This document shows, in pieces, positions 5,987 through 25,570 of a stretch of 63,969 nucleotides of DNA. Below the pieces are notes generated by a model that searched no databases, had not been told where the DNA came from, and was given only the letters and a program-made list of their open reading frames with translations. Origin of the DNA: Vitrella brassicaformis CCMP3155. Lineage: Eukaryota; Protista; Chromerida. The position numbers and the translations under genes are program-made. How positions within the stretch are numbered: the stretch's first letter is position 1; each line of letters starts with the position of its first letter. The stretch lies in NCBI GenBank assembly GCA_001179505.1, contig CDMY01000646.1, forward strand, positions 1 through 63,969, written 5' to 3'.

Positions 5987-8915
5987 TCAGTCCGAAACAG
6001 GAGTCACCTGCGTAATGCTGATCACCTGATCCGAGCTCTTGAGCACTATCTCCTCCCTTTCTACGCCCTTTCCTGCGGCAATGAACTGACTGTCGTAGCC
6101 TTCTGCCTTCCACTTGCGGCAATCACACCCCACAGGGACGTGGCCTCCTTTGCAGGCGCTGGCATCATGGTTCTTGCACCGGCCACAATCGACGACCAGG
6201 GTCATCACCACAGGAGGGCTTTTCATCCTCTCAGCCTTACCCTGAGCGAACACCATCGCCTGCAGAAATGGCAGAAGAAGCAAATGTGTGTGTGCTGTGC
6301 ACACCCCCTTTGCCTGCCCTGCACTAACCTTGCTGTGCTCCCTCGTCACGTAGAGACCACTTACAGACATGTTGTCTTCTCCTTTGCCGACCGAAAGATC
6401 GAATCCCGTCTGACGTATCCCGTCCGCCCCTGCCTCTGTCGTCCCATGGACGACAGTCAGAGGGACAGACTTGCCCGTCAGATTGCACGCTGAGCATCGC
6501 CATCCGCGCCCCTTGCACTTGAAGCAGGGATATGTCGTTTGCGAAGAGGCGCCCTCGAATAACGCCTGCAGTACAGGGGAAAGCAAAAACCCATCATCAT
6601 CACCCTCCACTCAAACTCATCATACTTACCGGACGAAAGGGTGTTCGACCAATTAGTTGAGCACAAGGAAAAGCGGCGGCAGACGTCGAAAACGGCGAGG
6701 GCCACGCACGGCTGACCTCAATGACCTCAATCCTGTCAGCGTCAAATTCAAGGCTTCTACCGAAGAAGGCATGTCCGCTTCCTTCCTGTCGCATGCCCTC
6801 GTATCCGACAAAAAGGTCACGTTTGTCAATAAAGCCGCTACACTTGCGAAGATCACCAGGACCGTCACGGCCAAGGACGAGCTGACCGGCGCCGCCAATC
6901 AAGAGGCATGGGCATCTCCACATCGCTCCTTCCTTGGGCGCCGCCAGCACTCCACGAGCCTCTGGACGTATCCTGATTTTCTTGGGCCGCTCGTATCCAC
7001 CAGACAGCGTGAATGACCACTGCGGGGGATGCCGCATCCCATGCTGAATCCCAGCTGTGGCATCGGTTGGGACGTGGATGCTGTCGTCGATGAAGGCGCC
7101 AAATATAAGCTCCTCCTTGAAGACGGCAATCACAAGGCCTCTCGATGCCTGTGTGTCCTCCTCATTCGAAGGTGCAGCGACGACTTTGAGCTCTGCCTCT
7201 CGCGCTTCAAGGCATCGCAGGAGGTCTGCATACTTTGCCCCATCACGTGTGCTGCTGAAAGCGCAAGTACATACAAAACGATGACACACAGGTTTCAGCA
7301 CTGAATTTCTTTCTCCGACATCGGTCCTTTACCTGTATACAAGCTTGAAATTGTAGCGGTCCGTCCGACTGAAGAAGTCATGCAGAGCAGCTGTCTGACA
7401 CGCATTCAGTCTGCTCCCATCGATACTCTACGAAACATATACACACATGAAATGCGTCCTGTGTGCCTGACCACTATTTTTCTGACCAGTGGTGGGATTG
7501 GCGAGCACCCATCGATCCTGATCACCTCCACTTCGTCGGCCATAAAGTGCCGCACACCAAGAGGCAGAGCCACGCTGTTGTTCTTGTCCCACACGCCTTT
7601 GTAGCCGTCCAGTATATCCCGTGCTGAGAGGGCGCCTCGGTTGATCGACACAGTGCACCTCTCTAGCTCGCGATCTGGACTCGGCTCAAAGTCATCTTCG
7701 CAGCCCAGCGCGAACAGGCCGTCGGCAAGGACCACCTTTGCCCTCTTCCCTCCGCTGTAGGGGAAAATCTCAACCCATCCGTCTCTTCCCGCCACCCGCA
7801 AAGCGCGATGATGTTGCTCAAGCTCGATGCACGTTGGCTGGTCGAAGACTTTCCGATCCAGAATCATGACACGTTGCCGAGTCTCGTGCTGGAAGTCACG
7901 TTGTGGATCATCTGGCTCTTCCAAAGCTCCCTCCACGTGCAAGCAGATCATGTATCCGCCCTTGCGGCGGATGACGAAAAGAAGATCGCCGGCACCCCGC
8001 ACACGTCCGAGCAAGTCAGAGTACTTCCAGCCATGACGCGAAGCCCTGAAATCAAACAGAAAGAATAGACAACAAGCCCTGCCATAAAGGAAGCTGTAGT
8101 TTGTACCTGTAGAGCATTGTGAATGAGCATTGGCTGAACAGCGACGGAACGAGCAGAGAGTGGAGATCATCACACTCAGACGCACTCAAGCTGCTGCCAT
8201 CGATTCTCTGTGGACAACACAAAAGAAACACAGCAGTCAGGAATTCCGTTTGAGTTTAGAGGGGTCTCGCGTACTCTTCTCTGCTGAGACGAGGTACCCT
8301 CGTCGGTGGGGACCTGCAGGTGCAGGAATACAGAGAGAGAGAGAGCAAAGTGAGAGTGCAAAGTGAGAGAGCAAGGTGCTGATCGTTGTGCTGAGAGCAA
8401 AGTGAGGTGCATCTTCTTACGAGGACCAATCGTAGAGCCAAGAGGAGGAAGAGAATGTGGCCGGGAAGAACAGCATTTAAGCTGATCAGGACGACGGAGA
8501 CGATTCCGAGAGCCCACTCTGCTGATCGCTGCGATGTGTTGCCGTCGCCGGTATCTGCCGCGGCAAGAGCAGCTTCCAAGTAAGCTGCACTACTGCTGCT
8601 CTCATCGTCATGCTGATGACATAACATTGATACAAACATTATTTGATCTTGACACATTAGATGGGAGAATGGGCAGGTCTGCTGACCTTTGGCGTGTTAT
8701 TTGGCTGGTCATCAGCAGCGATGGAAGGAGGACACTTGGGCGACGGATGCGACAACACCTGCACACACCAGATAAGCATGTCTGCTCTCTATGTGTTTGT
8801 CTCTAGGTGTGCTCACCGCAGACGGCGGCGCATGAAACTTGGGGAACGCGTCATTCTTGGCGATCTTTGTCGGTCGCCCTCTCTCATTGGTCTGTCTGCT
8901 CGTAGACGGCGCCAT
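5987..8915 (-). CDS. TM hairpin + two TLDc domains + CxxCxGxG zinc motif + Gig2/PARP-like ADP-ribosyltransferase domain
   Basis: TLDc1: YRASRHG...HFMADEVEV. TLDc2: YSSTRDG...FDADRIEVIE. A phase-0 intron (6566-6716) joins in frame to CFKCKGRGWRCSAC, then VVHGT...GFDLS...GLYVTREHSK|AMVF...VDCGRCK...WKAEGYDS...REEIVL (H-Y-E ART pattern). Confidence 0.75.
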
Positions 8916-8940
8916 CTGAATGACGACAGAGGGGGACCGC

Positions 8941-9705
8941 TCAGCCGTCAGAAAGCTCATCCCTCCTGGCTTTCTGTCTTACGCTCATGGTTTGTCGCTC
9001 TGATGGTGTGCCGTAGGCCGGCTGGTCGCTGGCGGCGGCTGCTACCTCGCTTGTTTGGCCCTGCAGTGGCGGTCCAGGTGCAGGCTGGGTGCTGGCTGCG
9101 GCCGTCGGCTGAACCATCGAAGAGGCGAGCGAGACAATGTCATAGTCTATTGGCGGCGGCTCGGCGCCGCCTTCGATTGTCTGGTGTGCTCCTGGGGATG
9201 ATGTCACACCAGAAAGGGCGGCAGTGAGGGGAATGAGGAGGGGATGGGGGTGGGGGGGATGCATTGCGGGAGGGGGGCCCGCAGCGGCTGAAGCCGATGC
9301 GGCCACGGGAGGTGGGGGGCCGTATGCTGGGAAAGCCATCAACGGTGAAGGGAGTCCAGCAGCGGCTGACGGCTGCCAGGCCCTGAACGTGTCGCCAGCT
9401 GACTCGTCATCTCGTAGGCTTCCCCCGAAGGCCATCTGTCCGCCAGCCATGCTGTCGCCGTTGGCAGGGGCGGCAGCAGACGACTCGAATGCGGTCAGGG
9501 GGAGGAGATGGGGACGCCAACCGCTGAACGTGTCATCAGCTGACTCGTCGTCTCGTGGCCAGCCGGTACCATGTTCTTCGCCCATGGCGTCTTCAAGAGC
9601 GGCAGCAGACGACATATCTGTTGCCAGCGGGTCAGTGAGGTAGGGGAAAGGGGAGTAAGACGGCACCACCTGAATGGCAACAGGGGGGGACCGCTCAGCC
9701 GTCAC
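8941..9705 (-). CDS. Hypothetical Ala/Pro/Ser-rich protein with internal repeats
   Basis: 254-codon open frame with a repeated DDESA[DG]DTF motif. The start region duplicates 8915-8950; related pieces at 9714-9985 and 23030-23400. Confidence 0.35.
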   Translation of the reverse strand: MTAERSPPVAIQVVPSYSPFPYLTDPLATDMSSAAALEDAMGEEHGTGWPRDDESADDTFSGWRPHLLPLTAFESSAAAPANGDSMAGGQMAFGGSLRDDESAGDTFRAWQPSAAAGLPSPLMAFPAYGPPPPVAASASAAAGPPPAMHPPHPHPLLIPLTAALSGVTSSPGAHQTIEGGAEPPPIDYDIVSLASSMVQPTAAASTQPAPGPPLQGQTSEVAAAASDQPAYGTPSERQTMSVRQKARRDELSDG

Positions 9706-10344
9706 ATAGTTTATTACTCTTGGCCTTTTGTCTTACGCTCATGGTGTCTTGTTGCGACTGCTGGTGGAGAGGGCGCCGCCGTCAGTAGCCGCATCATCGT
9801 CTGGTTGGTCCTGCAGCAGTGGCAGCGGATATCCTTCCGAGGCAAAGGAGGCAGGTGGGACGCTGCCAGCGGCCGCAGCGGCAGCTGCAGCTGTAGTATA
9901 GACCCTTCTCTCACACTCATGCCATCGGCGTCGTCAGAGGCGGCAGCAGACGACATATTTGTTGCCAGCGGGCCAGTGAGGGAGGGGGAGGGGATGAAGG
10001 ACAGGCGGATGCGTCAGCAAGGCCGGTGGGGGTGAAGAGCAGGGAGCGTCTGGTACGCCAGTCTGAGGCACGGCGCCGATCCACTGATTCACAGTCGCTT
10101 CAAACTCCTCCTCGCTCTACAGGGTGCACACAACAACACACCATTGCCATTAGGCCGGGTGTATACACACACATCCGTCTCTAACCGTCATTCCATCGGG
10201 GTTGTCGGTGCCTGCTGAAGCAGCGGCAGCAGAAGCAGCAGCAGCAGCAGCAGGGGACTCACCAGCTGCTGCGGGAGGGTTCTGACCAGACAATAAAGAG
10301 GTGAGAATCTCAGACCGTGACGGATCTCTTGTTGTGCATCCCTC

Positions 10345-11620
10345 TCATTTTCTGCCCTGTTGGCACCGTCTTCTGAAGTTTGTGATCCATTTGTCGGTGG
10401 CCGGGAAGCCAAGTTCCATCGCCTTTGCCCGGATGTCTCTCGGGCGGACGGTCATTGGGTCACGGCCGGCCATCCACCGCCGCATCGGATCCTCAATCTG
10501 CGGGTACTTGGGCTGTCTGTTGCACTTCTTGTTCGGATCGATAATCTGCTTGCCGTCCTTCCTTTCCTTCTTGATGGTATGGTACCACTGCCTGAATTGC
10601 TCATACTTGAGGCCCTTCTCCTTGGCGAACTTCCGCATGCTGATCTGCTCGCCGGATTTTTGACGTGAAATGAACTCGTCCACCAGCCGCTGCCGCTTGC
10701 CGATAGTGATCTCCGGTGCCCTCTCAGTGGACAACTGCAGGACACACAAACAAAGAGAGGCTATGTGACGGGCAGTGAGTGAATGGATTGCTGGGAGGAT
10801 TCAGAGTCTTACGTCAGGGGCATCTCCCGCAGTGGGCGCCAGCTGGGGAATTTGGTAGGGCGGGTAGCCATGGTGGGGGTGAGGATACTGACTACACACA
10901 AGAGTACGATCACATCAACGAGTGGGCCTCTCTTGTTCGTTCTCTCACCTGAGGTGTCTGCTGATGCATGGAGGGGCTCGCTGTGGGGTGGCCGGGATGG
11001 TCATTGTCTCCAAAGAGGCAAGGCAGGCCATCGGCTGGCTCGTCTAGTAGGCTCACATGTCCCGATGCCTGACTCCCACCGAAGCACTCAGCGTCCCCTA
11101 CAGCCACCAGACAATCGACGGTTGCATCTTCGCCTGCACGGCAATCGGAGCGCCTTGCGTGTCCGCTTACCTGATGCGTATCCGTCGGCTGCAGGGTCAC
11201 TTCGTGATTGCGGCTCTCTGGGATGCGACTGAGTCCCCCATCCGCCAGCGGCACTCCCAGACACATAGCCGGGTGGCTGCAGCAAACACACACACACAGA
11301 GAAAGAGAGAGAGAGGTCAAGTGATGCGATCCAAGGACTGCCGAGTATGCCCACCTGATAAGAGCCGTAGTAAGGAGCTGCAGCTGCGGCAGCGCAACCA
11401 CCATCTGCCACCTGTGAGAAAAGGGTAAGGAACAGAGTCACATCAGCACCACTGACTCCATCGCTGCACACACCTGTGTGTGAGTATCATCATCGTTATG
11501 CTCCTCGGCCGATTCGGTGGCATCCGTGGCCTGGAGAGAAGCACACAGCACATCAGCCAAAGATCTGTGTGTGGCGGCACAGGACGTCACCTGTGGGTGA
11601 GATCTGAACGAGTCGTCCAT
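10345..11620 (-). CDS. CENP-B/pogo-type tandem HTH DNA-binding protein, copy A (no DDE domain)
   Basis: Spliced low-complexity N-terminus from ATG 11620 (MDDSFRSHPQ). Last exon ITIGKRQRLVDEF...KFAKEKGLKYEQFRQW...RQPKYPQIEDPMRRWM...IRAKAMELGFPATDKWITNFRRR matches the psq-like plus Tc5-type HTH pattern. Confidence 0.75.
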
Positions 11621-14639: not shown

Positions 14640-15736
14640 TCACATTTTACTCACACCACAGCGAAGGCCCTGATCCAGTTGGGGCTCGCCGAGAAGCCAC
14701 TGACGCCGGACCCGGATGGCCTTCGGAGGGACGCTCATTGGATCAGCATGGTTGGCCATCCACTGCTGCATCACGTCCTCAATTTGGTGGTACTTCGGCT
14801 GTCTGTTGCGCTTCTTGTTTGTGTCGATGGCTTTCTTGCCCGGCGCCGGCTGCTTCTTCAGTTTGTGCCGCCACTGCTTGAACTGGCCAGGCTTGAGGCC
14901 CTTCTCTCGTTCGAACCGGGAAATGGTGATGCGCTCGCCGAACTTCTTCCGCCTTTCGAACTCCTCCACCAGCCGCAGCCGCTCGCCAATCGTCACCTCG
15001 CCGGCCCTCTCAGTGGGCACCTGCAAGACACACACACAAACACAGACAGCATTGGTGAGGCGACAGGCAGTGCGCGTATTTGGCAAGTGTGCATCACCTG
15101 CTGTGACGACTGGGGAGCCCTTCGTCTCGGTGAGTGCCGGAGTGGCGGGAGGGACTCTCCGCGATCTCGTGCGGACGGCTCAGGCGGCGGCCACATGACA
15201 TTGGGATGCATTTGGTAGGGCGGGAAGCCATAGTGAGTACGAGGATACTGACCACACACATGAGAGGACAATCACATCAACGAGTGGGCCTCTTTCCTTC
15301 GTTCTCTCACCTGAGGTGTCTGCTGCTGCATGGAGGGGTCGGCGATGGGGTGGCCGCTTGAATGGTGGCCTCCGCCATAGGGCAGATAAGAAACTGCCAG
15401 AGCACCGGCGTGTCGCTCCCATACATCATCTGTGGAACCACACAGTGCGTGATATCAGCCGTTCAGCTCACATGCGTGTCCATCGCGGCTCACTGTGATG
15501 CGACTGCTGAGTCATCCATTCACCAGCCGCACTCGCATCAAAATCACCTGGCACCTGCGAGGAAAGAGAAAGGAACAGATTCGCATCAGCACCACTGACT
15601 CCATCGCTGCACACACCTGTGTGTGAGTGTCATTGAAATGATGCCAGCGGTAATGATGCTCCTCGGCTCCCGTGGGATCATCATGAAATTCGCAGTCCCA
15701 CATTCCCTGTGGGCCAGATCTGCCTGAATCATCCAT
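14640..15736 (-). pseudogene. CENP-B/pogo-type HTH gene, copy C, frameshifted in the second HTH
   Basis: ATG 15736 (MDDSGRSGPQ); HTH exon paralogous to A and B. A 26-nt deletion relative to copy B near 14708-14714 moves GVSGFSASPNWIRAF out of frame. Confidence 0.6.
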
Positions 15737-16145: not shown

Positions 16146-18286
16146 ATGATGGGTATGTCCTTCCAAGAACTATGGCGACGGGGCATCCGAGGCTTCTCGG
16201 ACAGCACAGCGGACGATGGAGATAGCGATACGCGGTGCGTTGATGCAATGAGTGTGCACACACGCACGAATCTTATGCGTGTGTGGTCTGTGTCTTTGTG
16301 TGTGGTCTATTCCTGTGTGTGGTCTATTCCTGTGTGTGTCTGTTGGTCAGATCAACTAACGAGAACACGGAGAACACAGCCCACAACTTCAAGACCAAGC
16401 TCTGCCAAAAGTGGCTGCGTGGGGCACTCTGCGAGCGAGGCGATCGCTGTCCGTTCGCTCACGGACGGCAGGATTTGCGGCAGCGCATACCGGAGTGGTG
16501 CAAGTTCCACAAACAAGGTACGCCACAGAACGCCACGTTGGCCACACCTCATTCGCTGAAACCGACAGGCCAATGCCGCCATGGCGACGGTTGTCACGCC
16601 GCCCACACTCAGGAGGAACTCGACTACTTGCGGTATGGCAGAGACGAATGGTCGATAACTTCACGATACAATCCACTTGTGCACTTGGTTTGCAGGGACC
16701 ATCCTGAGGTATGTCGGCCTCCACAAGGAACCAGGTGAGATTGGCATCGGTGTGAGGGATACAGCCACTGACCGCTGTGTGTGTCGTGCCTTGTTGCCGC
16801 GTGCAGGAGCTCTGCAAAGGACGACAGTCCGCCCAGACTCGACGGGGCCTCGGCGCCCAACGGTGAGCCACTGTGCATCCCTCGTGTCGGTGTGTGACTG
16901 ACGCCTCTGTGTGTGGTGTGTCCGCTGCGTTTCCCCTCTCTCTCTCTCTTTCTCTCTCCCTCTCTTTGTGTGTGTGTGGTCAGATCTCGGTAGTGGCAGC
17001 TGCTCTGGTCGGCCACAGCAGTTGCGCGGGAATGAGATCGAGACCACGTTCGACATGGAGTCATCGGTGAGATACCCATCCACACACACGCACACACACA
17101 CACACACACGGAACCGGCGGAGCACGTACACACGCGCCTCTCTGTGTGTGTGGTGTATGAGTTCAGGATGTGGCTGGTCTTTACATCGGCAAGGGCGGCT
17201 CGACCGTCACGGCCCTGCGCGATCGATGCGGCGGACGGGGTACGCACAGCACTGGAAGGCCGGATGAACCAAACATATGCACCTTGTGCTGTATGCGCTC
17301 GTGTGTTCAGATGTGATTGACATTGTCATCCCCCACCGAAACGACAACAGCACAATAATCAAAGTCAAAGGTCAGCCCATATAGATAGAGACACACAAAG
17401 GCCACGACAGGCACATGTCCCTTCTGTGTGATAACATTACAGGCCAGCCGGCTGCCGTAGCTAAGTGCCTCGAGGAGCTAGAGGCGATCAAGAAGCAATA
17501 CGAAGGGCGACTGCCTTCCGCTGGCACGCCGCCCCGCACAGCCACACCTACCGCACCCACACCCACGCCGGGGCGTGTGTCTCAACCACCTCTGAACGGA
17601 CCCCCAGCAACGACCATGAACAGGTACCATGACTGCCAGGCAGAGAGAGTGAGTAAGGTGAGTTATGTGTGTGTGTGTGTGCAGTCGAGGAGCTGCTGCC
17701 GTGATCATCGACTCGGCCTTCCTGGACAAAAGGCATGTTGCCCTCACGGGACGTTTCATGACGTCCGAGGGCTTCCAGTACCTAATCAGCTGCTTCGGCT
17801 ACAAATGGCCTCAGTATGAGATCACCCCCAACAGCACCTATGTGGTGAGCACACGGCCCGACGACATGAGCACCATGGCAGCCCAGAGAGCTCTCAAGAA
17901 CTTCCACAAGGGCATTGAACACATGGCCAAGATCCACGAGGCCCGGTATGGGAGATGCGACACACACATCATGGCGAGAGAACAGACGCACCTGCCCCCT
18001 CTTGTGTGTAGGGTGAAGTCAAATGGCAAGCAGAAGGGTGCTGACATCGCAATCGCTGACATGCTGAAAGACATGGCCGACGACCCCGAGATCGCAGCGG
18101 TGGTCTTCGTGGCTGGGGTATGTTGCACACATTCGTTTATCTATGGTCACCCGTGGTCATCTGTCATGCGATCGTTCTCCATTTCTCTTGCACTGAAGGA
18201 TGGCGACTTCGTGGAGACGCTGGAAAAGACTCAAGGTCAGAAGCCGGTCTTCTTGGTGACATCGGACGGGTCATACGAGTAAGTGT
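16146..18286 (+). CDS. Two CCCH zinc fingers + KH domain + NYN (LabA/DUF88-type PIN-like) ribonuclease; 3' end runs into a gap
   Basis: FKTKLCQKWLRGALCERGDRCPFAHG and WCKFHKQG|QCRHGDGCHAAH; spliced KH DVAGLYIGKGGSTVTALRDRCGG...IIKVKG|QPAAVAKCLEEL; NYN VIIDSAFLD...KQKGADIAI...VFVAG|DGDF. The last seen donor at 18279 leads into the N gap. Confidence 0.8.
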
Positions 18287-18586
18287 NNNNNNNNNNNNNN
18301 NNNNNNNNNNNNNNNNNNNNNNNNNNNNNNNNNNNNNNNNNNNNNNNNNNNNNNNNNNNNNNNNNNNNNNNNNNNNNNNNNNNNNNNNNNNNNNNNNNNN
18401 NNNNNNNNNNNNNNNNNNNNNNNNNNNNNNNNNNNNNNNNNNNNNNNNNNNNNNNNNNNNNNNNNNNNNNNNNNNNNNNNNNNNNNNNNNNNNNNNNNNN
18501 NNNNNNNNNNNNNNNNNNNNNNNNNNNNNNNNNNNNNNNNNNNNNNNNNNNNNNNNNNNNNNNNNNNNNNNNNNNNNNNNNNNNNN
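18287..18586. other. Assembly gap (300 N) followed by a G run
   Basis: Run of N. Confidence 0.99.
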
Positions 18587-18654
18587 GGGGGGGGGGGGAG
18601 GGCGGACGTGACACACCCGGACCGCCATTGATACAATGTGACTGTCTGTAATTT

Positions 18655-20050: not shown

Positions 20051-22964
20051 CTACCCCGCCTTCGTTTCCCCCACCACGGCAAGCACGTCAACTTCATCAG
20101 CCATGAAGTACTTGCTACCCTCGAACACAGCACAGCCACGCTCATCCCTCACTCCTTCATAGCCCACAGGCACATGACCGCTCGGGATGCAATGACGGCA
20201 GCTGCGCATATCAGCAGCAGGGCCATAGCCGAAACCCAGCCAGCACGGCAGTCTCACACATCCATGCACATTTGAGCGTACAGCAGAGAAGAGAGAAGAC
20301 AATGCGACAGCAACGAAGAGGGGCTCGACACAGGACAGATGGTGAATTCACAAGTTTGCCACAAGTTTCACACACTTTCTTCCGAGGCAACATACAGAAA
20401 GTCACGGGAGGGCAGATGTCATAGCTTCCTGCTCACAGCAGCATAAACACGGAACACTACGCCAAACACCAACGACACACCGCCCCCTGCAAAAATACGG
20501 GCAGAACACCCAGTAGCAAAGTAAATGGCACAGACAGCTACTGCATTCCACAAGAAAATGCAAGAGAAGGCATCGACGTAGTGAGCGTCAAGCCACCGAT
20601 GCACCGGATCAAAAAAGCAGAAAAATGACATACAGCTCGCCATATCATCAGATGCCATCACTCTGAAGCAGAGTAAGGTCATGAACCCGCAGACGAGCGC
20701 TACCATCGGCCACAATACAAGCAATGTCAGTATTCCAGGCATTTCGTGTGGCTCCCACAGCCCCTCCCTAAACATCTTGACTGTCGGTATAATGCAATCA
20801 GTTAGCACCACCGCGCCTGCTATCAGCATCAGCAAGCAAAACCCCAGACGGCCCGAAAGGTGCGTCACATGTGACGAGGCTGATAACACGCCGTCCACGT
20901 GAATCACCTCCACTTCATCAGCCATTAGCACCTTACTGCCACCGAACAGAGCATTACCGCGGTCATCCCTCGGCCCCACATAGCCCTCGGGCGCATAAAA
21001 GCTGGAAATGCACTGCGAGTGTTGGCTGCGGATGAACTGCTGGCAGCTCCGCAGATCGTCCGTAGGGCCACTCCGATAGCAGCCATATCCCAACCACAGA
21101 CCCCCACACCCACCGATTCTGAGCTTTGCTCTCATTCCGAAGCCCGCTCCTTCCCTTCCGGCCACACACACTTGCTGTCTGCACTGCATCATCTTGGCCG
21201 GCTTGTCCGAGGGGCTGGGGAGGGAAAAATGCCACACAATCGTCTCGTACTTCTTCTTGCCTGTTGGAGTCTCCGGCAGCTTGATGCCATCCGCCATACA
21301 GGCCCCAAAGACATACTCGTCCTTCCTGATGACGAACACCAGGCCCTTGGCGTCGTCGACACATCGCAGCAGATCGGCGTAGCGACAGCCATCACGCGTC
21401 GCTCTGCAGTACGTGAAACAGAATGTCACATGAGGAAAGCAACAGATGGCAAACGCACCTGTAGACAAGACTTAGACTGCACTCTGTCGCCGGTCTGAGA
21501 AACTGGTGGAGTGCGCCGCATTGGAAGGGACTCAAACTGCAGCCATCGATAGCCTGCAGCCGATAGAGGTACATCAAACACATGAAAGCAACACTGATGC
21601 ACTCAGTTTTTTGCTGTGGGTGTGTGACCTTAAGCGGTGGGAGTGAGCGTCCATCAACATGAATAACCTCCAGTTCGTCAGCCGTAAGTACTTTCCAGCC
21701 AGCGAATAGAAGGAACTGTGGATCGCCCAGCTTCAAGCTGCGCTTTATACAGCAGCGGCGCATATTAGCTGCGTGGCCACGCCCACCATAACCCATAGAC
21801 AGAGACCGATTCATCAAGCCAATCATCGGCTCAGCTGTCCCCCAAGATCCTGTCCTCTTCTGCCCAGCCACACAAACGTCCTGCAACATTCGGGGGACTG
21901 GGATCTTGGTCGGTTCATCGAAGTATAGACCGGCAAGGGAGAAACACCACGAACTGCAGACGTAGTGGTTGACTCCTGCTGGATTCTCAGGCAGCTTGAT
22001 TCGGTCACTTATTCTGCCGCCGACAACACAGTCACCATCCCTGACGATGAACACCAGGCCCCTCGCATCGCCGACACACCGAAGGAAATCACTGTACAAT
22101 GGCCCGTCACGCGATGCCCTGGCAGACAAACGCACCCAAATGTCACTATCAATGTGTCCTATCAACGTGTCCCATCGTACGTCGTACCTGTAGAGCAGAG
22201 TGAATTCGCACTCGTCGTATTCGGACGGCACGACAAGAGACCGGAGGGCCGCACACTCAGCCGCACTCAGACTGCTGCCTTCGACCAGCTGGACATAGAA
22301 GGAGAGGCAAACAAGATCCGATTGCACGTGTCCATGATCGTATGCCGGTACTTGCCTGTATTGGCTCAGTCGCATCGCCATTCACTCCATCTACGGTGCT
22401 GCAGGCCGGTTGGACTGTCACGGTATCACCAGCCGCAGTCTGACAGCTGCCGACGATGGCCTGCAGGCAACACAGAACAGGCACACAGACAAAGATACGG
22501 CCACCAATTGACACTGCGTTGGCGAGTGGGTGTCGCATACGTGTGGTTGCTTGGCTGATCCTGTTTGTTGCGAGCATTGTGTATGAGGCCCCAGTCCCAG
22601 ACCGCCTTGCGGTGTTTCGTCGTCAGGCATATCAATCACGTAGTCAACATCCTGACGAGAGCGAACATAGAGAGGGACGAGATCAGGCTTATATGGCCAA
22701 CTGGTGCTCTCTCCCTTTGTGTTCTGACCTCTAGTGTGTCGGTCAGGCGCTCTTCGGCAGTGTTGGCGACGACAGACCTGGCCGACGAACGAGGTAGCTG
22801 CACGCATACACCAGACTATAAGCTGCCTGCGTGTCAGCGTGTGATCATTTCCTTAAAGGCCTCACCAGAGACGGCGGACCCTCCCGGTGGTCACGACCCT
22901 CAGGCTTGTGGATCTTGGTCGGTGGCCCTCTCTGGTTGGTCAGTCTCTCCACAAACGGCTCCAT
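20051..22964 (-). CDS. Multi-TLDc protein (two full and one partial TLDc) with an inserted multi-pass TM segment
   Basis: First exon MEPFVERLTNQRGPPTKI is paralogous to the exon at 8915. TLDc motifs YR|ASRDG...ADELEVIHV and YR|ATRDG...ADEVEVIHV; hydrophobic helices at about 20430-20850; half-domain ...FMADEVDVLAV at 20051-20270. Confidence 0.65.
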
Positions 22965-23084
22965 CTGATTGACAACAGGAACAGCTCAGATAAGCTGCTC
23001 GTTTGTCGAGAGGTGAATGGACCCTTTTAGCTTACGCTCGTGGTGTTTCGCTGAGAAGGCGACTGCTGGTCCAGCGGCCCATCG

Positions 23085-25570
23085 CCGTCATCAGCAGCCG
23101 ATTCGTCGTCTGCTTGGCCCTGCTGGGGCGGATATCCTTCCGAGGCAAAGGAGGCAGGTGGGACGCTGCTAGCGGCCGAAGCGACAGCTGCAGCTGCAGC
23201 ATGTGTATCTGGCTCCGGCTGGCCAGTGAGGGGAATGGGGAGGGGAAGGAGAGGGCCCGCAGCGGCTGACGGGCCGCCGAACGTGTCAATCAGCTGGCGG
23301 CCAGGCAATATCATACCCTTCTCTCACACTCGTGCCATCGGCGTCGTCAGGGACGGCAGCAGACGACATATGTGGCTGTGGCTGGTGAGTGAGGGTAAGG
23401 GCAAGGGGGAGATGATGGGGGTGAGGCGGACTTATTTCGGGCAAGGGTGAAGAGCAGGGAGCGTCTGGTACGCCAGTCTGAGGCACGGCGCCGATCCACT
23501 GATTCACAGTCGCTTCAAACTCCTCCTCGCTCTACAGGGTGCACACAACAACACACCATCATCGCTGGGTCTGATGAATGCGTTCATATTCGTCTCTTAC
23601 GGTCATTCCATCGGTGTTGTCGATGCCAGAAGCAGCAGCAGCAGCAGCTGCTGCTGCTGCGGGGAGCTCAGGGGCTGTGGGACGGTGCTGCCCAGACAAT
23701 AAGAGAGTGAGAATGTGAGACAATGGCGGATCTCTTGTTGTGCCTGCCTGCCTGTCATCTTTCTGACCTGTTGGAAGCGTTCTCTGAAACCCCTGACCCA
23801 GCTATCGCTCGCCGAGAAGCCACTGACGCCCAGCCGCATCTTGATCTCCATCGCTTTTTCTCTGATGTCCTTTGTGGGAACACTCATTGGGTCACGCTGC
23901 CCAGCCATCCACTGCCGCATCTCATCCTCGATCGGCTGGTACTTAGGTTGCCTGATGCGCTTCTTGTCTGCATCGGTCACTTGCACACCGACCTCCCTCT
24001 GCTTCATTAGCTTGTAGCGCCACTGCCTGAATTGGCCATACTTGATGCCGTTCTCCTTGGCGAACTGGGCCATGCTGATCCGCTCGCCGGACTGCTTCCG
24101 CCTCTCAAACTCCTCCACCAGCCGCAGCCGCTCGCCGATAGTGGTCTCCGGCGCCCTCTCAGTGGACACCTTCATGACACAGAAACAAAGAGAGGCTATG
24201 TGACGGGCAGTGCGTGAATGGAGTGGTGGGAGGAATCAGAGTCATACGTTAGGGGCATCTCCCGCAGTGGGCGCCAGCTGGGGAATTTGGTACGGCGGGA
24301 AGCCATAGTGAGTGTGAGGATACTGCGCAGACACAGAAGAGGACAATCACATCAACGAGTGTGCCTTTCTCGTTCGTTCTCTCACCTGAGGTGTCTGCTG
24401 ATGCATGGAGGGGTCGGCGATGGGGTGGCTGGCACGGTCGTCGTCTCCAAAGAGCCATTGCAGGCCGTCGAGTGGGTCGTCTGGTGGGCTGACATGTGCC
24501 AATGGCTGACTCCCACCAAAGCACTCAGCGTCCCCTACAGCCACCATGCAATCGACGGTTGCATCTTCGCCTGCACGGCAATCGGAGCGTCTTGCGTGTC
24601 CGCTCACTTGATGCGTATCCGTCGGCTGCAGGGTCACTTCCTGATTGCGGCTCTCTGGGATGCGACTGAGTCCCCCATCCACCAGCGGCACTCCCAGACA
24701 CATAGCCGGGTGGCTGCAGCCAACACACACACACGGAGAAAGAGAGAGAGAGGTCAAGTGATGCGATCCAAGGACTGCCGAGTATGCCCACCTGATAAGA
24801 GCCGTAGTAAGGAGCTGCAGCTGCGGCAGCGCAACCACCATCTGCCACCTGTGAGAAAAGGGTAAGGAACAGAGTCACATCAGCACCACTGACTCCATCG
24901 CTGCATACACCTGTGTGTGAGTGTCATCACAATTATGCTCCTCGGCCAATTCGGTGGCTCCCGCAGCCTGGAAAAAAGCACAAACAGGCACATCAGCCAG
25001 CAGCCAAAGATCTGTGTGTGTGTCGGCAAAGGACGTCACCTGTGGGTGAGATCTGAACGAGTCGTCCATCAGAAGGCCTCCTTTGGGCAGATCTCCGGAA
25101 AAGGACCTCAGATGAGGACGCCTTGGTTGGTTGGTTATTGTATTTCGAGACTCGTGTCTGTAACCCCGAGGGGATCCTGTCCAGGTCACGCACTAAACTA
25201 GCAGCATGCACATGCATAGAAGCATGCACACGGCCTGTCTCCCCATCCCACCCACCCACCCAGTCGACACGCACGTGCCACCCTATGATGGTCAGAAAAA
25301 TCGCTGTCGACACCGGTTGCCTTGTGCTCGGGGAATAGCGAAGGGAAGACCAGTTGCTCTAACTCAGATAAGCTCGCAGACCTTTGAGCTCGCACCAAAT
25401 GGCCGTCGCAGGCATGTCCTCTCTGTCTGCTGGTGTGCTGTGCTGTGTGTGTGTGCAGATCTCTTCGTCAAGGGCAAGATCTCGGCGGTGACTGTCACTG
25501 TGACTCATTCGGTGTCGTTATGGGGACGTCGTGGAGATATGCTCCTTTCTGGCGTCGTTATGGGAGGGCC
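23085..25570. repeat. Segmental duplicate of about 9780-11870 (low-complexity piece + HTH gene + promoter)
   Basis: Long near-identical blocks, e.g. 23447-23560 vs 10033-10145 and 24590-24920 vs 11150-11480. Confidence 0.95.
23603..25069 (-). CDS. CENP-B/pogo-type tandem HTH protein, copy B (no DDE domain)
   Basis: ATG 25069 (MDDSFRSHPQ). Last exon TIGERLRLVEEF...RQPKYQPIEDEMRQWM...IREKAMEIKMRLGVSGFSASDSWVRGFRERF. Confidence 0.75.

Follow-up and report, generated by a model that had tools for sequence, protein, structure and literature searches.

The minus strand of Vitrella brassicaformis carries, at positions 9742–5987 of the window (the whole 63,969-nucleotide stretch of DNA that was analysed), a spliced and expressed 12-exon gene whose 994-amino-acid product, CEM27896.1, alone among the loci examined joins a pair of TLDc domains to a predicted zinc knuckle and an ADP-ribosyltransferase (ART) domain. 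From its N terminus, the product consists of about 320 low-complexity residues, a hydrophobic stretch, two TLDc domains, a flexible linker of about 40 residues, a four-cysteine knuckle and a compact ART. Taken as a whole, the locus is best explained as a spliced TLDc–TLDc–zinc–ART gene that arose by gain of a cassette and whose ART modifies a partner held by the TLDc pair, a reading that we consider probable but hold with reserve. The ART would attach ADP-ribose from NAD+ to a partner, probably as single units; the tandem TLDc module would bind or sense that partner, and the flexible linker would allow the enzyme to reach it. The first candidate partner is the V1 sector of the V-ATPase, since no other TLDc ligand has been established by experiment. 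If the hydrophobic stretch is translated, it would tether CEM27896.1 to a membrane; the simplest arrangement would be a monotopic hairpin with both ends in the cytosol. The features of the locus are:

9724–11600, minus strand: 5′ module (upstream region, HTH, start of the linker), by DNA identity to a neighbouring paralog
10348–10740, minus strand: relic of a CENP-B/Tc5-type HTH head, probably non-coding and outside the annotated coding sequence on its upstream side (paralog identity, Pfam)
5987–9742, minus strand: complete coding region in 12 exons, with 994 codons and a TGA stop (the exon translation tiles P0163 exactly)
9742–9737, 9669–8983, 8915–8817, 8758–8687, 8612–8421, 8313–8275, minus strand: exons 1–6
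8207–8107, 8045–7487, 7427–7333, 7254–6630, 6565–6329, 6259–5990, minus strand: exons 7–12
8983–9742, minus strand: exons 1–2, Ala/Pro/Ser-rich low-complexity region, residues 1–231, with the family motif MHPPHPHPL (public model, paralog homology)
8687–8915, minus strand: exons 3–4, residues 232–288, homologous to internal segments of paralogs
8421–8612, minus strand: exon 5, residues 289–352, of which the last 32 (8516–8421) are hydrophobic (hydropathy, codon-position GC, GTAAGA donor)
8275–8313, minus strand: exon 6, 13-residue connector, residues 353–365, aligning with the acidic stretch that precedes TLDc1 in the paralogs
7487–8207, minus strand: TLDc domain 1, exons 7–8, residues 366–585 (Pfam, HMM, tblastn)
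6705–7427, minus strand: TLDc domain 2, exons 9–10, residues 586–800 (transcript L001, HMM, AlphaFold)
6527–6704, minus strand: linker, residues 801–838, split by intron 6629–6566 (junction on the transcript; pLDDT <50)
6485–6526, minus strand: predicted zinc knuckle, CxxCxGxG then CxxC, residues 839–852, a DnaJ-type motif (sequence motif; pLDDT ~93)
5990–6463, minus strand: predicted ART domain, PARP fold, Gig2-like, residues 860–994, split by intron 6328–6260 (model and family searches)
6448–6446, minus strand: H865
6352–6350, minus strand: Y897
6187–6119, minus strand: Cys/His-rich insert, residues 929–951
6055–6050, minus strand: E973–E974
5989–5987, minus strand: stop codon
5597–5986, minus strand: 3′ untranslated region, to the limit of transcript L001

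All 11 introns are canonical (GT–AG) and the 994 codons are open across them. An exon-by-exon check matched the 12-exon translation residue for residue to the database protein P0163 (CEM27896.1, A0A0G4GEQ7); whole-protein analyses were carried out on the database proteins P0001 and P0163. CEM27896.1 is a public protein that had previously gone unstudied. A transcript contig, L001 (1,713 nt), is identical to the genome save for a 10-N scaffold gap and lacks introns 7486–7428, 7332–7255, 6629–6566 and 6328–6260, confirming the last four introns of the model. Since these introns have been spliced out, one mRNA holds in a single frame the last 91 nt of TLDc1, the whole of TLDc2, the knuckle (CxxC..CxxC) and the ART, as the original prediction of in-frame splicing had proposed; the named elements are all on the minus strand in one frame, and the contig argues against transcripts that end after TLDc2 or begin only after it. 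Several details of that prediction needed correction. The intron between TLDc2 and the ART, formerly placed at 6716–6566, is 6629–6566 with a GTAAGT donor, which lengthens the linker by 29 residues, and the ART open reading frame contains a second, in-frame intron of 69 nt (6328–6260). The ATG at 8915, taken as the upstream end of the gene, begins exon 3 and is internal, because an AG acceptor lies directly before it and an in-frame GTAAGA donor (8982) lies 67 nt upstream; the annotated start is the ATG at 9742. The reading frame of L001 is open up to the 5′ end of the contig. Scans of metagenome contigs by protein and by exact 30-mer found no transcript for anything upstream of 7577, and everything upstream of that position, including the hydrophobic exon, rests on annotation and splice-site logic. 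The 5′ third of the gene is without RNA support, and its 6-nt first exon (9742–9737) is present in the annotation only.

Paralogs P0017 and P0039 have linkers homologous to the region of exons 1–2. Exon 5 resembles the confirmed exons in GC by codon position and ends in a strong GTAAGA donor; the metagenome-contig scans found no transcript covering it. Its hydrophobic stretch (residues 321–352; Kyte–Doolittle 19-residue means of 1.7–2.3), the only one in CEM27896.1, consists of two runs of about 13 residues flanking an N..PGH break. The stretch is missing from P0017 and P0019 and is unique to CEM27896.1 among the paralogs compared. A hydrophobic pair and membrane anchor had been envisaged near the N terminus; the stretch turned out to be internal, 320 residues from the annotated N terminus and 13 residues before TLDc1.

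Both of the predicted TLDc domains are supported by profile matches and by the predicted fold. Pfam TLD (PF07534) matched P0163 in two stretches (38.4 bits against a cut-off of 24.5; E 1.5e-9), with single exons alone scoring 13.6–14.9 bits, and an HMM built from the paralogs only matched TLDc1 with E 5e-25 and TLDc2 with E 7e-33. TLDc1 also matches the Pfam-positive paralogs P0017–P0020 (tblastn). The AlphaFold model of TLDc2 (pLDDT 77, pTM 0.75) adopts the TLDc fold and superposes on the V-ATPase-bound structures of Oxr1, NCOA7, mEAK7 and Rtc5p, and mEAK7 and OXR2 ranked first, weakly, when a profile of the Vitrella TLDc family was compared with PDB sequences. TLDc2 retains the DG, FG and E-V motifs of the family; TLDc1 lacks several conserved residues of the family consensus, the FG glycine among them. 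CEM27896.1 thus shares its TLDc fold and Pfam TLD match with the V-ATPase-binding TLDc proteins (OXR1, NCOA7, mEAK7/TLDC1, TLDC2 and TBC1D24; Oxr1p and Rtc5p of yeast), but differs from them in its tandem TLDc domains, in belonging to a lineage-specific expansion and in being fused to a different class of enzyme.

All five mammalian TLDc proteins and those of yeast bind the V-ATPase (PMC8608904, PMC9263379, PMC11066047). By analogy, the TLDc pair might dock on the V1 sector of this pump, with the ART modifying either the pump itself or one of its endomembrane neighbours, as the superposition of TLDc2, its retained motifs and the position of the hydrophobic stretch next to TLDc1 would allow. 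However, the Vitrella genome has at least 147 TLDc places, mutually only 30–40% identical, a diversity that fits many ligands better than one and forbids taking V-ATPase binding for granted in any single copy. In addition, the isolated TLDc domains of TBC1D24 and TLDC1 failed to bind the pump in pull-downs, and TLDc1 of CEM27896.1 lacks the FG glycine. We therefore regard docking on V1 as unlikely and prefer the broader reading, in which the TLDc pair would hold a partner that the ART modifies.

The zinc-type motif anticipated as CFKC..CSAC is present at residues 839–852. Its first half is exact (CFKCKGRG) and its second is a CxxC followed by NLTG; Pfam gave no match for it on CEM27896.1. Relatives have one to several such knuckles, and the comparison of P0009 with Pfam DnaJ_CXXCXGXG gave E 1.4e-5 and 25.7 bits, below the cut-off of 32.7. 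The core motifs expected of the ART all follow in one frame (HGT 865–867, GLYVT 895–899, W954, GYDS 958–961 and EE 973–974), and the C-terminal part models as an ART fold, again as foreseen. AlphaFold assigned pLDDT >90 across most of the domain, and Foldseek found 210 PDB matches to the model at E <= 1e-3, those listed all being catalytic domains of PARP1, PARP2, PARP4 or tankyrase. Direct family and PDB sequence searches with the ART open reading frame yielded nothing useful; the link came through phmmer against representative proteins (19 of the 29 hits carry Pfam PARP) and then through a profile. Pfam PARP (PF00644) did not match the ART open reading frame, P0001 or P0163, and its scores in the nearest relatives were 27.3 (P0002), 28.8 (P0005) and 39.0 bits (P0006) against a cut-off of 26.7. 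Compared with the PARP catalytic domain (ARTD, H-Y-E clade), the ART of CEM27896.1 is without a helical regulatory domain, spans about 135 residues rather than about 230 and has, by motif alignment to PARP1, alanine at the nicotinamide-binding serine position, as does the whole Gig2-like family.

As judged from alignment and model, the H-Y-E triad (His, Tyr, Glu) is intact in the ART. H865, Y897 and E973/E974 occupy, in the predicted structure, the strands where the triad would be expected; they were equated with PARP1 H862, Y896 and E988 (E973 for the last) by family alignment and strand position, not by residue-level superposition. The corresponding columns, and with them the other core positions (H138, G139, T140, Y170, W227, G231-Y232-D233, E246 and E247 in P0001 numbering), are kept in 46–54 of the 55 family members. 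Column 166 is valine in CEM27896.1 against glycine in 53 of the 55 relatives. This substitution, the missing Pfam PARP match and the fact that the literature searched holds no demonstration of biochemical activity for any Gig2 protein would suit a pseudo-enzyme or an NAD+/ADP-ribose-binding module, in which case CEM27896.1 would act by binding only. Against this, the His, the Tyr and both Glu residues have been kept on long branches at about 50% identity to the nearest paralog, and the fold is predicted with pLDDT >90. Retention of the catalytic residues despite a divergence of about 0.8 substitutions per site from that paralog suggests constraint on the ART; loss of catalysis thus seems improbable, and we continue to read the domain as a putatively active enzyme.

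The specific likeness to Gig2 that had been suggested is borne out by the family profile, which retrieved hundreds of proteins named GCRV-induced gene 2 at the top of its list, and by direct BLASTP matches to tilapia gig2p (E 1e-7) and Danio gig2q (E 5e-8). The similarity covers the PARP-like N-terminal part and the W..GYD..EE C-terminal part, with one Danio gig2q alignment reaching the EE. In the tree, CEM27896.1 falls in a protist clade (97/95) separate from the vertebrate clade (99/98). By this phylogeny the ART is a member of a protist clade sister to vertebrate Gig2, and because it lies outside the vertebrate clade we call it Gig2-like rather than Gig2. Gig2-like ESTs from a dinoflagellate and a haptophyte had already been reported in 2013 (PMC3617106). 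CEM27896.1 and the Gig2 proteins of non-amniote vertebrates have in common a compact ART unit of about 140 residues and the motifs HGT, G.G.Y, KA..[YF], W...GYD[ST] and EE. In contrast to Gig2, the Vitrella/protist branch has a Cys/His-rich insert (C..H....C...H....C.C) and, before the ART, predicted DnaJ-type zinc knuckles, and in CEM27896.1 a TLDc pair is fused on as well; Gig2 proteins are interferon-induced and occur as stand-alone or tandem ART units, with ubiquitin fusions in lamprey.

Homology across the locus indicates that the gene descends from a large Vitrella HTH–TLDc–TLDc family with a CENP-B-type HTH head, a descent absent from the original prediction. Members of this HTH(CENP-B/Tc5)–TLDc–TLDc family (for example, CEL98338.1 and CEL98344.1) align collinearly with the gene over its 5′ module, linker motifs and TLDc pair, and 9724–11600 is 78–83% identical in DNA to 23023–25049, the 5′ module of a neighbouring HTH–TLDc–TLDc paralog, with identity to that module reaching 92%. 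The HTH relic aligns with the head of P0019 (55% identity, E 5e-39) and scores 21.0 bits against Pfam HTH_Tnp_Tc5 (cut-off, 22.2). The ATG of the neighbouring paralog is CTG here, its GTGAGA donor is GGCAGA, and no GT occurs before the stop at 10345. CEM27896.1 thus differs from its HTH–TLDc–TLDc paralogs in being without their start codon and first donor, and in its extra hydrophobic exon. The public model leaves out the HTH region, so that CEM27896.1 has no HTH head, and a shortest-path search over GT–AG introns from the HTH open reading frame to the downstream exons found no path retaining the whole HTH; many arbitrary intron paths start from other ATGs, so such a search cannot fix the 5′ end. 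The HTH head has decayed and probably lost its coding capacity, which shows that part of the locus is degenerating. Another HTH copy, at 14640–15086, was considered as the head of a neighbouring cytidine-deaminase gene and rejected, the deaminase open reading frames being on the plus strand.

At the other end of the gene, the zinc knuckle and ART are 48–54% identical to stand-alone zinc-knuckle–ART paralogs (CEM22860.1 and CEM11115.1), and the ART tree pairs CEM27896.1 with P0002 (97/88). An HTH–TLDc–TLDc family member may thus have gained the C-terminal zinc-knuckle–ART cassette of these small paralogs and later lost its HTH head. Two observations that seemed to bear on this origin were set aside. 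P0039, a transcript-derived protein with an HTH–linker–zinc–ART order, is probably an assembly chimera across the shared linker, because its residues 49–652 map to contig C22 and residues 507–909 to C314. On C561, a TLDc gene lies some 7 kb upstream of, and in the same orientation as, the nearest ART paralog; it gives no support for an ancestral adjacency, because CEM27896.1 has no detectable similarity to its TLDc protein.

Zinc knuckles are often nucleic-acid binders. Together with the DNA-binding HTH head of the ancestral family and the weak precomputed Pfam PTS_2-RNA (Tpt1/KptA) matches that many Gig2 relatives show besides PARP, this would be in line with an ART that, like Tpt1/KptA and some PARPs, modifies RNA or DNA phosphate ends and not proteins, the TLDc pair serving to regulate or localise it. 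The HTH head has decayed at this locus, however, and the best structural matches are PARP1, PARP2 and PARP4, not Tpt1; we judge modification of nucleic-acid ends to be very unlikely. Least convincing of all is the view that segmental duplication left a decaying chimera here, transcribed without maintained function, for although the start codon and first donor of the HTH head are gone, the linker frame is shifted relative to the paralog proteins, TLDc1 is divergent and only a partial transcript was found, the 994 codons are open over 11 canonical introns, correctly spliced RNA exists and catalytic and core residues have been retained over a long divergence, which together make it a most improbable account. 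The reading that we favour is still that of a TLDc pair holding a partner for a Gig2-type ART.

The claim that no TLDc–ART fusion had been described agrees with our searches. No such fusion was found among 1.84 billion representative proteins (the word search being limited by protein length) or in the literature searched, no Atlas cluster combined TLDc and ART families, and no sequence-search match covered both halves. Of seven ART loci in the genome, none but that of CEM27896.1 was found to have a TLDc immediately upstream, and the flanks of the four ART paralog loci that were read contain no TLDc. The twin TLDc plus Gig2-like ART is thus a new combination among the proteins and papers searched; Gig2-like algal sequences as such were already known.

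We know of no agreed molecular role for TLDc domains beyond V-ATPase binding, and the pairing of two such domains with an intact-looking Gig2-type ART poses a testable question: does the TLDc pair select the substrate of the ART? The TLDc expansion in Vitrella, previously unreported, contrasts with a handful of copies in most eukaryotes, and such a pattern is usual in conflict or stress families. Gig2 proteins are antiviral in fish. By analogy, the expansion and the vertebrate parallels (Gig2, IFI44 and NCOA7-AS) hint at a role in stress or antiviral defence. The fuller scenario suggested by the same analogies, that the tandem TLDc would bring the Gig2-type ART to the V-ATPase or another endomembrane complex in an algal stress or antiviral response, we consider quite unlikely. 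If it were true, the gene would be a Rosetta stone for two families that act separately in vertebrates as interferon-induced genes (Gig2 on one side; IFI44, NCOA7-AS and similar TLDc proteins on the other), and both enigmatic families would gain a testable biochemical partner. The value of the finding is limited in that it concerns one gene in one species. A parallel in architecture is offered by IFI44/IFI44L (TLDc plus GTPase), in which a TLDc module is likewise joined to an enzymatic or NTP-binding module; in CEM27896.1 the partner domain is an ART and not a GTPase, and the sequence kinship is limited to the TLDc part. An Atlas cluster of chordate TLD plus MMR_HSR1 proteins is among the structural neighbours.

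The gene under study (minus strand, 9742–5987) is a genuine domain fusion, and the original prediction had read it correctly: two TLDc domains, a zinc knuckle and an ADP-ribosyltransferase (ART) domain are joined in one frame. The region has a GC content of ~56% and short GT–AG introns, and minus-strand open reading frames (ORFs) follow in series from 8960 down to 5987. The C-terminal ORF, used in a word search, matched a single protein, P0001 (267 aa), from the 1713-nt JGI contig L001. The five blocks in which L001 aligned to the window at 100% identity (sole exception, a 10-N scaffold gap) indicate that it represents spliced RNA from this gene. The transcript frame is open from base one and covers the end of TLDc1 and TLDc2; rather than ending there, it continues as P0001, which takes in a linker, then the zinc knuckle and ART domain, up to the stop at 5989–5987. 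The 90%-identity cluster of P0001 includes P0163 (CEM27896.1, UniProt A0A0G4GEQ7; 994 aa), which is public under no assigned name, only as an 'uncharacterized protein'; whole-protein analyses were run on these two database proteins. Exon-by-exon translation tiled P0163 exactly with 12 exons, all AG/GT-flanked, and a hand-built model based on splice sites and on homology to paralogs was identical. The main features of the locus are as follows.

9742, minus strand: annotated start ATG (public model; first exon of 6 nt)
7577–7487, 7428–7333, 7257–6629, 6566–6328 and 6261–5597, minus strand: alignment blocks of L001
6187–6119, minus strand: Cys/His-rich insert C..H....C...H....C.C (P0163 residues 929–951)
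10740–10348, minus strand: upstream helix–turn–helix (HTH) head, 55% identical to that of paralog CEL98338.1

L001 confirms the last four introns. Contig scans by protein and by exact 30-mer found no transcript of the gene upstream of 7577, so the model there reflects annotation and sequence logic, and ATG 9742 is uncertain as the true start. Details of the prediction required correction. The TLDc2–ART intron, placed at 6716–6566, is 6629–6566 (64 nt, donor GTAAGT), and a second, in-frame intron (6328–6260, 69 nt) lies within the ART ORF; ATG 8915, taken as the 5′ end, opens exon 3 and is preceded by AG, with an in-frame GTAAGA donor at 8982.

Both predicted TLDc domains are present. Pfam TLD matched P0163 in two stretches at 38.4 bits (cut-off, 24.5), with weak matches on lone exons, and a hidden Markov model built from 31 paralog sequences alone recovered TLDc2 (E = 7e-33) and TLDc1 (E = 5e-25). 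The Vitrella paralogs P0017–P0020 and P0027, which match Pfam TLD down to E = 3e-19, are collinear with both domains. When the main exon of TLDc2 was modelled with AlphaFold (pLDDT 77, pTM 0.75), the top-ranking Foldseek matches of the model were all TLDc structures. TLDc1 is the more divergent domain, with, for example, I-C replacing the family F-G.

The C-terminal ART ORF matched nothing in Pfam, NCBIfam or PDB sequences. Searching 1.84 billion representatives with P0001 (phmmer) gave 29 matches, of which 19 have Pfam PARP, six have TLD (these six match the TLDc half) and none has both; the closest are Vitrella paralogs and protist transcripts, followed by lamprey and frog proteins. A profile built from these matches retrieved 562 proteins, topped by fish, amphibian, shark and lamprey sequences, many named GCRV-induced gene 2 (Gig2). 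Because two frog sequences were in the profile, we compared P0001 directly by BLASTP, which supported the proposed likeness to fish Gig2 (tilapia gig2p, E = 1e-7; Danio gig2q, E = 5e-8). The ART fold was likewise borne out: with a 55-sequence alignment, AlphaFold modelled P0001 residues ~105–267 mostly at pLDDT >90, and Foldseek matched 210 PDB chains (E ≤ 1e-3), those listed all being PARP1, PARP2, PARP4 or tankyrase catalytic domains.

In a maximum-likelihood tree, the ART of P0163 pairs with that of CEM22860.1 (97/88) within a protist clade (97/95), whereas vertebrate Gig2 forms a separate clade (99/98). The protist clade also differs from Gig2 in conserving the Cys/His-rich insert, which occupies the same columns in the relatives P0002–P0012 and is absent from Gig2; N-terminal of it these ARTs carry at least one CxxCxGxG knuckle. 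The insert may provide a second zinc site, located in the loop before the W..GYD strand. Terminal branches measure ~0.8–0.9 substitutions per site, so the fusion is not recent.

The architecture of P0163 is intact in its folds and key residues. The HGT histidine, G.Y tyrosine, tryptophan, GYD and both glutamates, kept in 46–54 of the 55 family sequences, all occur in it (H865, Y897, W954, G958–D960 and E973–E974) and have persisted despite the long branches. It departs from the family in a valine where 53 of 55 relatives keep glycine, and our own motif alignment places alanine, throughout the Gig2-like family, at the PARP1 nicotinamide-binding serine position. The domain would probably be an active enzyme; that it is a pseudo-enzyme we consider unlikely, and that it acts on nucleic-acid targets less likely still. 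A decaying chimera is the most improbable reading of this locus.

The TLDc pair would select the partner of the ART. V-ATPase, the target originally proposed, is the sole established TLDc ligand (PMC8608904, PMC9263379) and is a candidate here; with a Vitrella TLDc family this large and divergent, varied ligands are favoured. In the 72.7-Mb, 1064-contig assembly, where the window belongs to contig C646, the TLDc2 exon matched at least 147 places (E ≤ 1e-5), often in tandem clusters (contigs C802, C268, C217, C242, C326, C306, C315, C718 and others), and we found no literature report of this expansion. The CENP-B/Tc5-type HTH head matched ~30 places, also often in tandem, and in annotated paralogs the order is HTH, low-complexity linker and then two TLDc domains. 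A neighbouring copy in the window (minus strand) comprises:

20419–24175, minus strand: HTH-TLDc-TLDc paralog (5′ module, 23023–25049)
23603–24175, minus strand: its HTH head ORF
21392–22381, minus strand: its TLDc1 ORF
20419–21468, minus strand: one ORF of TLDc2 plus a C-terminal tail containing several hydrophobic stretches

With this tail, the C-terminal module of the family varies between none, ART and multi-pass. The 5′ module of the fusion gene (9724–11600) shares 78–83% DNA identity with that of the neighbour (92% around the start), and its head scored 21.0 bits against Pfam HTH_Tnp_Tc5 (cut-off, 22.2). Given that CTG replaces the paralog's ATG and GGCAGA its GTGAGA donor, that the stop at 10345 has no GT ahead of it, that the linker shifts frame relative to paralog proteins and that CEM27896.1 excludes the head, we conclude that it is a relic. 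A third, shorter copy of the HTH head together with its upstream region (14640–15086, minus strand, with 15210–15633; 72–90% DNA identity to 10428–11490) has no TLDc downstream, where plus-strand cytidine-deaminase ORFs fill the space. Upstream stretches of the heads of the fusion gene and its neighbour are also duplicated (10783–11471 and 24218–24878), with similar plus-strand ORFs (149 and 215 codons) that may be genes or merely part of a duplicated promoter region. A run of N marks an assembly gap at ~18283–18600.

Six further loci carry the zinc-knuckle-ART cassette as a small gene in its own right (C409, C561 with CEM22860.1, C424, C314 with CEM01961.1, C206 and C738); TLDc was absent directly upstream at the four whose flanks were read (C409, C561, C424 and C314). 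Most simply, an HTH-TLDc-TLDc gene would have captured such a cassette at its 3′ end. The HTH-linker-zinc-ART transcript protein P0039/P0016 (MMETSP and JGI) was set aside as a probable assembly chimera that does not attest an HTH-headed ART, mapping to two contigs (C22:206069–208399 and C314:78894–80502) that have a near-identical linker segment in common.

The fusion appears undescribed, as predicted: no protein among the 29 phmmer matches matched both halves, no nearby Atlas cluster held both families, and literature searches for the accessions, Vitrella with TLDc or a TLDc-ART fusion found no mention. Gig2-like sequences were listed in 2013 from a dinoflagellate, a haptophyte and marine metagenomes (PMC3617106), so an algal Gig2-like ART has precedent, and what is novel is the fusion together with its family setting. 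Lamprey proteins P0014 and P0036 (735 aa) fuse Gig2-like ART units to several ubiquitin repeats ('polyubiquitin-like').

The hydrophobic pair predicted near the N terminus exists but is internal: residues 321–352 (8516–8421), two ~13-residue runs separated by N..PGH, form the sole segment with a 19-residue hydropathy mean >1.6. Codon-position GC of their exon is coding-like, its donor is strong and the flanking introns are typical (74 and 107 nt); paralogs P0017 and P0019 have no counterpart. Membrane association is plausible, with the balance tilting slightly towards it. Hydrophobic segments lie elsewhere in relatives: C-terminal and multi-pass in the neighbouring paralog, C-terminal in P0007, and N-terminal in the C409 ART paralog (L005:1498–2136, minus strand; CEM11115.1 spans part), where the segment immediately precedes the CxxCxGxG knuckle and may make a membrane-tethered, stand-alone version.
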